DNA of 64,000 nucleotides from Oculina patagonica (Eukaryota): contig NC_135764.1 in the NCBI RefSeq assembly GCF_052425735.1, forward strand, positions 12,400,001 through 12,464,000, in the 5' to 3' direction. A program made the position numbers and the translations under genes. This document shows, piece after piece, positions 34,642 to 52,475 of the stretch (position 1 is the first letter of the stretch; each line of letters begins with the position of its first letter). The notes beneath the pieces were generated by a model, which searched no databases, had not been told where the DNA came from, and saw only the letters and a list, made by a program, of their open reading frames with translations.

Positions 34642-34726
34642 TTATCGGCAGGGGCACAAAGCATTGCCAATGTTTGGAACCCAAACTTGTCGACTTCTTT
34701 GCACCCTTCTCCGCGTCTTTTTTCTC
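34642..34726 (-). CDS. Giant protein, predicted last exon (RKKTRRRVQRSRQVWVPNIGNALCPCR*)
   Basis: Acceptor ttttccttag; phase 2 matches the upstream exon. Confidence 0.6.
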
Positions 34727-35261
34727 CTAAGGAAAAAAATAAATAAATAAAACTTAGCCTTTTTTACTATGCTAAGATCTAAATTGATATGGGCTGTATC
34801 CTTTGTATTAAAGCAAACGAAGCTACAACAGGTTTTAAAGATCAGCGAAGATGCGGATCTGAAGTTCATCGACGTGATTCACCCCACAGTTGCATTTTTA
34901 TACACACCCGTGTTGGGGATAAATCCGGTGAGATCCGAACTGGTGAGTGTTTTTGCTTTCCAGGTAAAAGTTTGATTTCCGGCCGTGAAACATCTTGGTC
35001 AATGATTTTTGCCCTGGTTAAGTTTCTACCGAACACCTGGACAACGTCCAGCTGTAGCTTTTTTTTTAGGTCACACGGGGAGAACTTGAAAAATTCAGCA
35101 TAACTTTTTCAAGCTGGGATCTGAAGCTCCAGATGGTATCACAATAATGACACTTTTTATAGCTTCAGTAACGCATCTGGACCACTATTTATAGGTTTAC
35201 TCAAGTCTTCAGGCTCTTAAAATTCTTCAAAATGAAGCTGGTGTCACTCCCTTTAACCCAC

Positions 35262-49700: not shown

Positions 49701-52475
49701 CGACAGTTCAAGATTGCCAGTTATGACAAGGTTGTAAGAGGGTATATCGTTGAGATCTTTAACGCGCAGGTTCATGGTAGGTGCTATAAGAGAACAGCAG
49801 GACTTGAAAAAAGACCAAGCGTTTGATATCTGTAGTTCAAGGGAAAACGAATGCAACGATTCTAAATTTTTCGAGAGCTCTACTTCCGCCAACTTTACTA
49901 AAGACGCACCAATAGCATTCATGTCAAGAAGACTGGCGTCTGGCACACTCTTCAATTGTGGGACCATCTTTTGCAAAGCATCCTTCACCAGGCGTTCCAG
50001 GTCAAAGGCATTCATGGGCTTTACAAGACGCAAGAGGTGACCAGCAGATGAGTTTGTTAATTCGAGTTCCAAGTTTGTAGTTCCTAATAAAAGAAATCCC
50101 CTTAAGCTAAACAACTGAGGTGTCATAACGGCTGTGACATTCGAAATTTCAAGAGCTCCAATTCCACCAAGGTCCCACGATGTGCTGCATACAGCGATAA
50201 ACTCAGTGATTTCGAATGCTGTCAACCTTTCATCAAAAGTTATCTGTAGCTTTTGAAGAATTAACTCTGGAAGATATGACCCAAGCATCGTTGGAAATTT
50301 GCTTCTCGTCAGAATGCCAATAAGTTGCTTGAATAAAACACGAGGAGTGTCATGTTCAGGGAGGCTAATGGTAAGATTTCGTTGTTTTGATAAAGGAACA
50401 ACCATCTCAAAAGGTATGTGTACACTGCCCTCTACCAAAACGATCATTCCTCTGATCAACATGTCGAAGGACCCTTGAACGTTGACCTCGATCAAAAACG
50501 ACACATTTTCAACGCCGAAAAAGTCATCAAGAAGTTCCCATGAATACTTTGGGAGGGCACCCATAAATGTTACCTTTTCAAGTAAAAGATCACTTGACAA
50601 ATGGAACAAAGTTTTTTCAAGGGTAAAACCAGGTACGATTGCGAGTTTGGTTCTCCGCAGACCAGTTAAAGTTTCGTGAAGTGTTTCGCTAGCACTCCCA
50701 AAGAATGTACGATAAACGACCCTGATAAACGGCAGAACACCAAACATTTCCATTCGTCTCGAAAGCTCTATGACGTGGCCTCCGCTAGATGGTGGCCATT
50801 CAATTTCACAAGGTAAGCTGAAATTTCCAAGCATTATTTCACCGGTAACTCGGGTGCGATTGAATGTGTAAATCACTGTCATATTTCCAAGATAAAAGAA
50901 CGGAAAGTTCCATTTTGTTCTTGACGGTATTTCAACCCGAAAGGCTGTTAATAGGAAAGAACCAGTTAAACTCGAAGGAAACTGGATCTTCAACTTTTTA
51001 ACCAGGAAGTCTGTTAGTAGAGTCTTCAGAAAGGATGGGAAAACATTACTTAGTCCTCCCAGTTTTAAAATGCTGTTCAAATCAGCCTGTATCGTCTTTC
51101 CAGCTTGAAGCGATAAGGATAAGGCTTCGACTTTTGTTGGAATTTCGATCACAAAAGGAAATTCGAGGAATATTGGATTCCCGATCACAACTGTTCCAAA
51201 AACCTCTGCTTTGATTTCTGCGAGACGAGATCCTGGGAGAACAGCTACTTTGAAGCCTAACGTCGAATTCAACAATTTTGTCGGAATTGATGCTCCGTCG
51301 AGAACGTTCCATTCTGTCGGAATTCCAATCAAGATGACCATACTGGCTAGACTTAACTTTGGTCTCAAGCTGTAGCTAATTTTGAACAGGTAAAGCCGAA
51401 ATTCAAATGATGATAGATTCAATCGCATAAAGGCTGTGTCTGGTCGACGCTCTTTTCTTTCTTCAACACATGATAGAAGACTGTCGATAGAAATTGATGT
51501 ATTTCCGTTCTTAGCGTCTTTCATGGCATCTAAGCTCAGGAACCGTTTGGTGTTTTTCAGCATAGTAACCGATAGCTGTTGTCCACAGATGTCGATGGTG
51601 GCTTCGAATGTGTTACGAGGTTCCGTCAGTTCTAATGTGGCATTTCTTATAGTCACTTTGCCTAGAACTAAAAATGGTTTTGTCGAAATAGTCGTGACAT
51701 TGACTATTGAGATATTGGAAAGCCCAGGTGCCACGCGTAGGAAAAACTGCGGTACTTTGATGTTTTGTGAGAAGTTACCGATTGCTTCTAAAGTATTTCT
51801 ATCCATGTGTGAAGAAAACAACGGTACCAGCGAGCTGAAGGTGACAATGGCATTCTTGTCAGCACCGCTTATTTCCAAAACATCGTCTGGGCTTTCGGGA
51901 AAGTCGATTTCAATGGGCAGTCCTGGAATGCTCAAATTGGAGGCAACTTGATTAATCGCCGCGATAAAACCTTTGGCTTTCACTTTAAATGTGTAAGGAA
52001 GAAAACCTAGTTGAACAATCAGTTTAGGCTCAACGACTTTGAACTGAAATTTGTTCAAGGCATCCCATCCAGGGATACTGAACATCATATCAATCGATGA
52101 TAGGTTTCCATCATCAAAAGACAGTGTGAAAACATCAATGGCGAAACCAAAGTTTCCAACCCCAACCAATTGAAAAGAGGGCAATGAACCATTGACGCCT
52201 ACCTGTTTGGTGAATCTGTCAGCAAAGTCATATATATCAGGGACTGGGAAGTTCTGGTTGCTTGGTAACTGTATGCTTCCACTTTTGTTCAAAGGCCATG
52301 GAAACTGCACAGAGATGTTTAGGCTTCCAATTTTGACGTCAGCATGGTGTAGCCCGGAGCTTTCGTTCCAAATGTTGACAAGCTCGATGTTTGCTTTAAG
52401 CAAGACTTGCTCGACTTCCAGCAGAGAGGAAAACTGCCTTTCACCAGTGGAATAACAGCTAATAACGCACCATAG
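37763..52475 (-). CDS. Giant multidomain secreted protein, 14,713-nt exon (beta-repeat region, coiled coil, EGF, PKD, PGLYRP2-N-like, PSI, LysM, M23-like, LNR x11, Ca-EGF array)
   Basis: Uninterrupted ~4,900-codon frame. Acceptor tttacag ends at 52476 and is followed by LWCVISCYS, a plausible end of a signal peptide; donor G|gttag at 37762. Domains were recognised from Cys spacing and motifs. The ATG exon was not found. Confidence 0.92.

Follow-up and report, generated by a model that had tools for sequence, protein, structure and literature searches.

In a 64,000-nucleotide window of the genome of the stony coral Oculina patagonica (contig NC_135764.1, positions 12,400,001 to 12,464,000; all positions below are those of this window unless stated otherwise), we identified a real, transcribed six-exon gene that is conserved in stony corals and encodes a secreted mosaic protein of 5,323 amino acids (aa) without a membrane anchor. 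By profile alignment, residues ~714-2441 of the product are homologous to a family of giant, stand-alone bacterial proteins over the entire length of the latter. We place high confidence in this anatomy and the bacterial homology taken jointly. It is also probable, at a distinctly lower level of confidence, that the module was acquired horizontally in the stony-coral lineage and fused to animal extracellular modules. What the protein does is addressed more tentatively in the Discussion.

Structure and transcription of the gene

The minus-strand frame 52505-37761 is uninterrupted for 4,915 codons, and the probability that such a frame would stay open by chance was estimated at ~1e-127 at ~43% G+C. 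An earlier note, made from the DNA letters alone, had proposed five in-phase exons of 15,939 nucleotides (nt) and an additional first exon that it could not place. The total was exact: exons 2-6, all on the minus strand, sum to 15,939 nt, are all in phase and have GT-AG at every border, as established by border reading and assembly. Exon 2 (37763-52475; 14,713 nt, residues 12-4916) follows the acceptor TTTACAG at 52476 and has no in-frame ATG of its own at its start. It encodes the remainder of the signal peptide, the bacterial-type module, helices, EGF, PKD, PGLYRP2-N-like, PSI, LysM and degenerate LytM (dLytM) domains, the LNR array and most of the EGF domains. Exon 3 (37084-37495; 412 nt) encodes EGF and calcium-binding EGF (cbEGF) domains matched by Pfam EGF_CA, and exon 4 (36086-36702; 617 nt) encodes five cbEGF (EGF_CA, 168 bits, 5 stretches). 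The first half of a Cys/Tyr-rich, EMI-like tail lies in exon 5 (35262-35373; 112 nt), which has no Pfam match, and its cationic end lies in the coding part of exon 6 (34642-34726; 85 nt including the stop codon).

The missing first exon is very probably the candidate at 54875-54843. Residues 1-11 of P0007, an NCBI-modelled paralogous protein described below, were placed there by tblastn with 8/11 identical, and P0007 residue 12 fell exactly at 52475. The coding part of this candidate exon 1 (54843-54875, minus strand) consists of an ATG and 10 codons, corresponding to 11 signal-peptide residues, in the context AAAG-ATG and followed by a GTATGT donor; its phase (0) matches the acceptor at 52476, and the splice sites were checked. 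Adding exon 1 brings the coding sequence to 15,972 nt, for a product of 5,323 aa that begins with a classical signal peptide. This signal peptide is the sole hydrophobic 19-mer in the product, in agreement with the earlier proposal that no transmembrane helix is present.

Transcript evidence came from three sets of probable RNA runs (X1, X2 and X3) with three organism labels, 95-99% alike, whose contigs were compared with positions 33500-38500. Spliced contigs from X1, X2 and X3 displayed the joints 37763/37495, 37084/36702 and 36086/35373; their ends, CT..AC, correspond to GT..AG on the gene strand. The joint 37763/37495 was present in three run sets, one X2 contig joined 34443-34725 to 35261-35373 and then to 36086-36370, and all four 3' junctions are backed by spliced transcript contigs. 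Depth over the introns was zero except for a single low-depth X2 contig within intron 3, and contig depth extended the 3' untranslated region (UTR) to ~33783. Words sampled from the 5' 8 kb of exon 2 were found at 0.44 in X1 and 0.39 in X2, compared with 0.64 in DNA runs. The spliced contigs and the words in X1 and X2 together answer the doubt, raised in the earlier note, that no transcript might exist. The longest contigs, of 17.4 and 16.8 kb, have the size expected of the full messenger RNA, an agreement in length that the tables do not prove to be spanning. A polyA raw-read run (X19) had no reads over the 3' region and was uninformative. Near the 3' end, an X2 3'UTR contig omits 33902-34442 (541 nt) with non-canonical ends (TA..TT), either a species indel or an odd UTR intron, and a 500-N gap lies at 32904-33403, ~400 nt past the mapped 3'UTR end.

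A module homologous to giant bacterial proteins

The bacterial-type module (45186-50369, minus strand) comprises a beta-sheet body followed by Ala-rich and amphipathic helices. A profile of residues 1250-2290 was searched with hmmsearch against 1.84 billion representative proteins, giving 271 matches at E<=1e-3, of which 95 reached E<=1e-10. A sharp drop in score separates the coral sequences (E 0 to 1e-281) from the next match (2.4e-43), and from that match onward the proteins are 1,500-3,300 aa long. HHalign of coral residues 1-2480 against 45 full-length bacterial members gave a probability of 100 and E 3.2e-57 over 1,471 columns, aligning coral residues 714-2441 with positions 8-1689 of the 1724-residue bacterial template. 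This coverage indicates that the coral protein contains the bacterial one in full, with its helices. Clear motifs are common to both sides of the core alignment, and the core most conserved with bacteria (46674-47570, minus strand, residues ~1647-1945) contains motifs of the LPKYTGG, PIPIFAAPF and YTERNYLL types. The earlier note had described the first ~2,200 residues as a beta-repeat region. The homology to a bacterial family means that this is not an anonymous repeat. Shifted HHalign alternatives hint at internal repetition and suggest that the ~700 extra N-terminal residues (21-713) may be more repeats of the module kind. BLAST self-comparison of the N-terminal region detected no repeats.

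Outside stony corals, all relatives whose source was checked are bacterial, among the matches listed (150 of 271, most of them unnamed). They include Calothrix BAZ08367.1, hypothetical proteins in metagenome-assembled genomes of Bacteroidales, Spirochaetota and Desulfobacteraceae, and proteins on contigs with ordinary bacterial neighbours. BAZ08367.1 of Calothrix sp. NIES-4071/4105 is 1,701 aa long and labelled 'LamG domain-containing protein'. When one genome per bacterial species was scanned, carriers were found in Calothrix, Alkalinema, Leptolyngbya, Nodosilinea, Scytonema, Brasilonema, Ktedonobacteraceae and Streptosporangiaceae, as well as in Melioribacteraceae, Aliikangiella coralliicola, Desulfobacter, Roseivirga, Myxococcales and Chlamydiales. 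Cyanobacterial carriers score best against the coral profile, from which no donor was concluded. Among the eukaryotes seen, the module family is limited to stony corals. Its breadth in bacteria and the bacterial nature of every sourceable non-coral match, among the matches listed, argue for the horizontal origin.

The bacterial proteins have no signal peptide and no clear membrane segment, contain less than 1.5% Cys and carry an Ala-rich helical stretch near the C-terminus; the source of one member calls it ElaB/YqjD-like, presumably on account of its helices. The family is absent from Pfam, NCBIfam and PADLOC: the N-terminal 2,200 aa of the coral protein had no match in Pfam and NCBIfam, and PADLOC returned none for five bacterial relatives. 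No gene neighbours were conserved across 32 bacterial loci, and the contexts seen (ABC exporter, radical SAM/SPASM, TIR and NADase_transloc pairs) were not shared between loci. On one bacterial contig (L003:14535-15410, Logan SRR14116364), a 291-aa gene (P0168) lies directly downstream of the 3,257-aa member P0033. Its product is a homologue of the family's C-terminal beta-sheet-plus-helix part and ends in a Cys-Val-Ser repeat, indicating that small paralogues exist next to a giant gene.

An AlphaFold2 (AF2) model of the coral module, with a predicted local distance difference test (pLDDT) of 52, consists of long beta-hairpins and then long helices. DUF6603 and AsmA-like/YdbH/TamB models ranked top for its shape in three libraries; AFDB cluster matches were DUF6603, AsmA-like C-terminal domain, YdbH-like and apolipoprotein B-100, and ESM Atlas matches to residues ~1912-2270 were DUF6603, YdbH, TamB and AsmA/YhdP. 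Pfam found no DUF6603 in nine bacterial relatives and neither AsmA nor TamB in the module. PDB folds returned for the beta-sheet model by Foldseek and VIA were generic large beta-sheets and barrels with a root-mean-square deviation (rmsd) of 12-40 Å, and were not read as homology.

The bacterial-type part ends in amphipathic helices, and then comes the motif G-K-R-S-I-Y-R-R-D (residues 2402-2410; 45279-45305, minus strand), at what would have been the end of the ancestral bacterial protein. In the alignment, KR and RRD are invariant in 24/24 coral relatives. G-KR is the usual amidation signal, and the motif is a plausible convertase site.

Glycan-related and extracellular domains downstream of the module

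After the motif, one EGF domain precedes two PKD domains (44409-44900, minus strand as for all domains below; residues ~2537-2700), which Pfam recognised at 47.1 bits against a cut-off of 23.5 in 2 stretches (PF00801). The next segment (43626-44408; residues 2701-2961) forms a PGLYRP2-N-like helical domain, as the earlier note had suspected: in AFDB-SwissProt, Foldseek matched it to residues 30-353 of mouse PGLYRP2 (Q8VCS0) with a probability of 1.00 and E 1.8e-3 at rank 11, and Pfam returned nothing for it at E<=1. No Amidase_2 (PGRP) domain was detected by Pfam or PDB profile anywhere in the coral protein, which is therefore not a PGRP. A putative PSI domain (43434-43604; residues 2969-3025) follows, then a second PSI-like Cys motif and an EGF to residue ~3113. 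For PSI (PF01437), the fold search lent support, Pfam gave 17 bits, under its cut-off, and the PDB profile search a weak match.

The LysM domain (43011-43160; residues 3117-3166) adopts in its model the beta-alpha-alpha-beta fold of ~45 residues. The window copy was unmatched by Pfam LysM (PF01476) at E<=10, and 8/22 orthologous segments matched it (best E 1.1e-5); the earlier LysM call is supported by the fold search. A Cys-rich linker follows (42756-43010; residues ~3167-3251). Weak matches to Pfam Trefoil (P-type) were seen for it in 10/22 orthologues (best E 0.043), and it may be a small, poorly modelled disulphide-rich domain. The domain beyond the linker (42465-42755; residues 3252-3348) had been called M23-like. 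Fold searches upheld the M23 beta-sheet fold, and the peptidase character was lost: in the alignment F-V-S/R-V stands in place of the HxH motif and no orthologue has a His there, and the first motif (HxxxD) reads H-W-L-D with the wrong spacing, its His varying to Y, N and K. Pfam Peptidase_M23 matched 1/22 orthologous segments (E 0.081). Since the zinc ligands are missing, we regard the domain as a degenerate, non-catalytic LytM and not a peptidase.

The fold assignments were made on an AF2 model of residues 2700-3590, built from 22 coral sequences, with a pLDDT of 49 overall and confident islands. Foldseek against the PDB placed M23/LytM structures in nearly all of the top 50 rows, and the top AFDB-SwissProt matches were YgeR and NlpD, across both LysM and LytM. 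An exhaustive fold search independent of Foldseek gave the same three answers, with LysM matches from bacteria, fungi, plants and algae that included the chitin-binding Ecp6, CEBiP and a Volvox chitinase. Neither residues 2700-3590 nor the LysM-LytM segment gave an M23 match when searched by profile against the PDB; LysM-containing chains were marginal (LytN, E 0.53; Ecp6, E 0.58), GNPTAB LNR was matched in the search of residues 2700-3590, and otherwise only LNR, EGF and weak PSI were recovered. In segment-wise Pfam searches at E<=1, the first 2,200 aa and the LysM/M23 segment had no match and the coiled-coil part gave noise only.

The LNR region (40536-42464) holds one LNR (residues 3349-3381; 30.6 bits in Pfam), an alpha/beta region (~3395-3575), 2-3 EGFs and ten tandem LNRs (~3641-3991). 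Pfam confirmed the one-plus-ten LNR arrangement, the PKD pair and the EGF/cbEGF arrays of the earlier description, with LNR (PF00066) at 109.6 bits against a cut-off of 21.2 in 11 stretches. On exon 2 it reported EGF_CA (13 stretches), EGF_3, cEGF, LNR, PKD and EGF_2. Stretches of cbEGF (PF07645) number 13 + 2 + 5, of which exons 3 and 4 supply seven; strict D-x-D/N-E-C signatures number 17, and Pfam puts the EGF/cbEGF total at ~20 or more. The EMI assignment of the earlier note was not supported: the 65-aa tail had no match to EMI (PF07546) or any other family at E<=1, and only the Cys/Tyr pattern is left of it.

Relatives in corals and a second copy in O. patagonica

A word-indexed search retrieved 24 coral relatives with 52-91% identity, nearly all of them ~4,900-aa single-exon calls in coral assemblies. 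Conservation among corals is highest at residues 1400-2000. The sole named relative, P0007, is uncharacterized protein LOC144660575 isoform X1 of O. patagonica itself, at 65% identity. When the N-terminal profile was compared with this genome, two loci with intact frames were found on one contig of 33,308,145 bp, 16 Mb apart, and P0007 is 100% identical to the second locus, demonstrating that it is a paralogue and not an orthologue. This paralogue, at contig positions 28,446,000-28,461,000, has an intact open frame of 4,982 aa and splits its signal peptide after residue 11, as the window gene does. A tree built on the conserved N-terminal part puts the O. patagonica copies in different well-supported clades, indicating that the duplication is older than several of the sampled lineages.

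Other features of the window

A small secreted Cys-rich protein gene is present in two copies 29 kb apart (1106-1717 and 30719-31396, both on the plus strand) that have the same signal peptide and three ~55-aa repeats each, with a pattern like C.ET..SSQCQG....C.GWS...WT..FRDDTD.RGGGC.Y.W. Retroelement-like open reading frames (ORFs), gag-like and reverse-transcriptase-like by eye from their translations, occupy 58400-61400 (minus strand), 5153-6021 (plus strand) and 30209-30628 (minus strand). On the minus strand, a 302-aa ORF at 12348-13256 resembles an NHL/beta-propeller repeat protein and a 351-aa ORF at 13566-14621 is coiled-coil-like. Short IPT/TIG-type immunoglobulin-like ORFs, also assigned by eye, lie at 62140-62403 and 63230-63538 (plus strand) and are probably exons of the next gene upstream.

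Discussion

As the best explanation of the whole, which leads its rivals but which we hold at somewhat less than even odds, we propose a secreted mosaic with an acquired bacterial module, glycan binding and release. The mechanism behind it is put forward a little more tentatively still. The C-terminal array and tail would tether the protein in mucus or matrix, where the LysM/dLytM/PGLYRP2-N-like block would bind, but not cleave, a glycan containing N-acetylglucosamine (GlcNAc), either peptidoglycan or chitin. Cleavage by a convertase at the invariant KR/RR motif would then free the bacterial-type module, whose beta-sheet and amphipathic helices could act on membranes or lipids. Such a peptidoglycan sensor with a cleavable effector is compatible with the predicted domains and with the invariant KR...RRD motif. 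A bolder version seems to us improbable; in it, an ancestor in the stony-coral lineage would have captured the whole giant bacterial gene, added a signal peptide and joined it to a peptidoglycan-recognition cassette (PGLYRP2-N-like, LysM and inactive LytM) and a matrix anchor. The product would be a tethered sensor, from which convertase cleavage at KR/RR would release a ~2,400-aa membrane- or lipid-attacking beta-sheet module onto bound bacteria; such a protein would represent a new class of antimicrobial effector in animals and, in a teneurin-like manner, bacterial weaponry domesticated for defence of the host.

Several points weigh against this proposal. The KR/RR site is a candidate by its motif, and LysM binds chitin too, so that the ligand could be either glycan. 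Mean pLDDT is low for both AF2 models (49 and 52), and the PGLYRP2-N match is one Foldseek entry with an rmsd of 9.9 Å on a model of modest confidence. The DUF6603 and AsmA-like shape matches have template modelling (TM) scores of just 0.1-0.3; Pfam DUF6603 (PF20248) was unmatched in the whole genome at E<=1, and control genomes gave none either. The bacterial family has no conserved neighbours, and the case for a horizontal origin depends on no other eukaryote appearing among the matches that could be checked, with 150 of the 271 listed and most of those unnamed.

The strongest rival, which we consider unlikely yet a real contender, is a structural protein of the extracellular matrix, skeletal organic matrix or mesoglea with no immune role, in which the cbEGF and LNR modules and the EMI-like tail would form calcium-stiffened fibrils as in fibrillin or emilin. 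On this account, held to be just as unlikely in its detail, LysM would anchor the fibrils to chitin or other GlcNAc polymers and the bacterial-type module would be adhesive or space-filling. The ~20 or more EGF/cbEGF and 11 LNR modules, all calcium-binding, the LytM domain without a catalytic site and the chitin-binding Ecp6, CEBiP and Volvox chitinase among the LysM structure matches all suit it, and restriction to stony corals among the eukaryotes seen would fit calcification. It leaves the invariant dibasic motif unexplained, however, and the order LysM-dLytM with a PGLYRP2-N-like domain is typical of peptidoglycan biology. Nor do the terms 'EGF', 'PKD', 'Notch', 'LysM' or 'M23' occur in the main text of the published O. 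patagonica skeletal proteome, which is weak evidence. We give considerably less weight to an extracellular lipid-binding or transfer protein, an improbable reading in which a beta-sheet groove like that of the AsmA family, YdbH, TamB or apolipoprotein B would be capped by apolipoprotein-like helices; that it would carry lipids in mucus, or between the host and its microbes or symbionts, is improbable to the same degree. The AFDB cluster and ESM Atlas shape matches (DUF6603, AsmA-like, YdbH, TamB, apolipoprotein B-100) and the ElaB/YqjD-like name of one bacterial member speak for such a carrier, but the TM scores of 0.1-0.3 come with large rmsd and a low-confidence model. In addition, no Pfam match to AsmA, TamB or DUF6603 was obtained, the PDB matches are generic large beta-sheets, and the bacterial relatives do not have the signal peptide or membrane anchor typical of AsmA-like proteins.

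Force- or ligand-gated signalling, with LNRs shielding a cleavage site as in Notch so that the protein would be a regulated proteolytic switch or a ligand, is less probable again. It would account for 11 modules of a type otherwise rare outside Notch, PAPP-A and GNPTAB, and the alpha/beta region after the first LNR has no assigned fold. Against it, the protein has neither a transmembrane segment nor an intracellular part, the post-LNR region gave no match to the Notch heterodimerisation or SEA domains in any search, and the ten LNRs stand in tandem with only EGFs after them. An artefact (contaminating bacterial DNA, an assembly error in joining, or a gene no longer alive) could be suspected from the exclusively bacterial non-coral relatives of the N-terminal module, among the matches listed, and from the lack of an in-frame ATG at the start of exon 2. 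The module, however, shares one open frame with EGF, PKD and LNR domains, the start codon sits in the upstream exon, and we excluded an artefact on the basis of the GT-AG borders, the spliced contigs, the intact relatives in many coral assemblies and the second intact copy in the genome; what likelihood it retains is negligible.

Corals control their microbes by innate means based on mucus, and few of the molecules that take part in this have been identified. The gene described here is conserved, expressed and very large, and the public annotation of its paralogue is just 'uncharacterized'. Its product combines a bacterial-type LysM-dLytM cassette, a PGLYRP2-like domain and a 1,700-aa module that is otherwise bacterial-only among the listed matches that could be checked. 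If the horizontal origin is true, this would be a rare, teneurin-like case in which an animal has domesticated a giant protein of bacterial origin. The gene also offers a starting point for working out what a widespread, unnamed bacterial family does. Being small, the LysM/dLytM block lends itself to expression, which makes binding to peptidoglycan versus chitin directly testable.

Comparison with known systems

No characterised protein is known to have the same architecture, and the statement of the earlier note that no characterised animal protein with it was known still stands. Searches of the literature likewise yielded nothing relevant on the coral architecture, on horizontal transfer of LysM or M23 into corals, or on DUF6603. 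The bacterial giant family, of the Calothrix BAZ08367.1 type, has the same order as the coral module, with a beta-sheet body and then Ala-rich helices. Its members are stand-alone proteins without a signal peptide, with almost no Cys and with none of the EGF, PKD, LysM or LNR domains, whereas a signal peptide and ~700 N-terminal residues of the same kind have been added in the coral copy. Among named shapes, DUF6603 (PF20248) and the AsmA-like YdbH, TamB and YhdP rank best for the module, at the TM scores given above and with no sequence-profile match.

The LysM and zinc-less LytM domains are arranged as in NlpD, a bacterial amidase activator, and the LytM domain is degenerate and non-catalytic, as in NlpD, EnvC and DipM. 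Unlike NlpD, YgeR and EnvC, the coral pair is a small cassette within a 5,323-aa secreted animal protein, with a Cys-rich linker between its domains, 12-20% identity and no known partner amidase. Residues 2701-2961 resemble only the non-catalytic N-terminal domain of PGLYRP2, the vertebrate N-acetylmuramoyl-L-alanine amidase, a likeness of fold without sequence-level support. LECT2, an animal protein of the M23 fold, is small, has a single domain and retains its zinc site, whereas the coral LytM domain has lost its own. With proteins of the fibrillin, Notch and emilin type the coral protein shares tandem cbEGF modules, LNRs and, at one end, an EMI-like pattern of Cys, but none of the parts that define such families (TB, Delta/Serrate-binding, ankyrin, gC1q or others) is present in it.

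The closest conceptual parallel we draw is with the teneurins, transmembrane proteins in which EGF repeats are fused to a huge bacterial-toxin-derived module with a YD-repeat shell. Pfam on exon 2 and the PDB fold search of the beta-sheet model revealed no RHS/YD or teneurin-type fold in the coral protein beyond EGFs, so the likeness is one of concept. Considering these comparisons, we rate the product as a mosaic secreted recognition or matrix protein with a putatively domesticated bacterial module.

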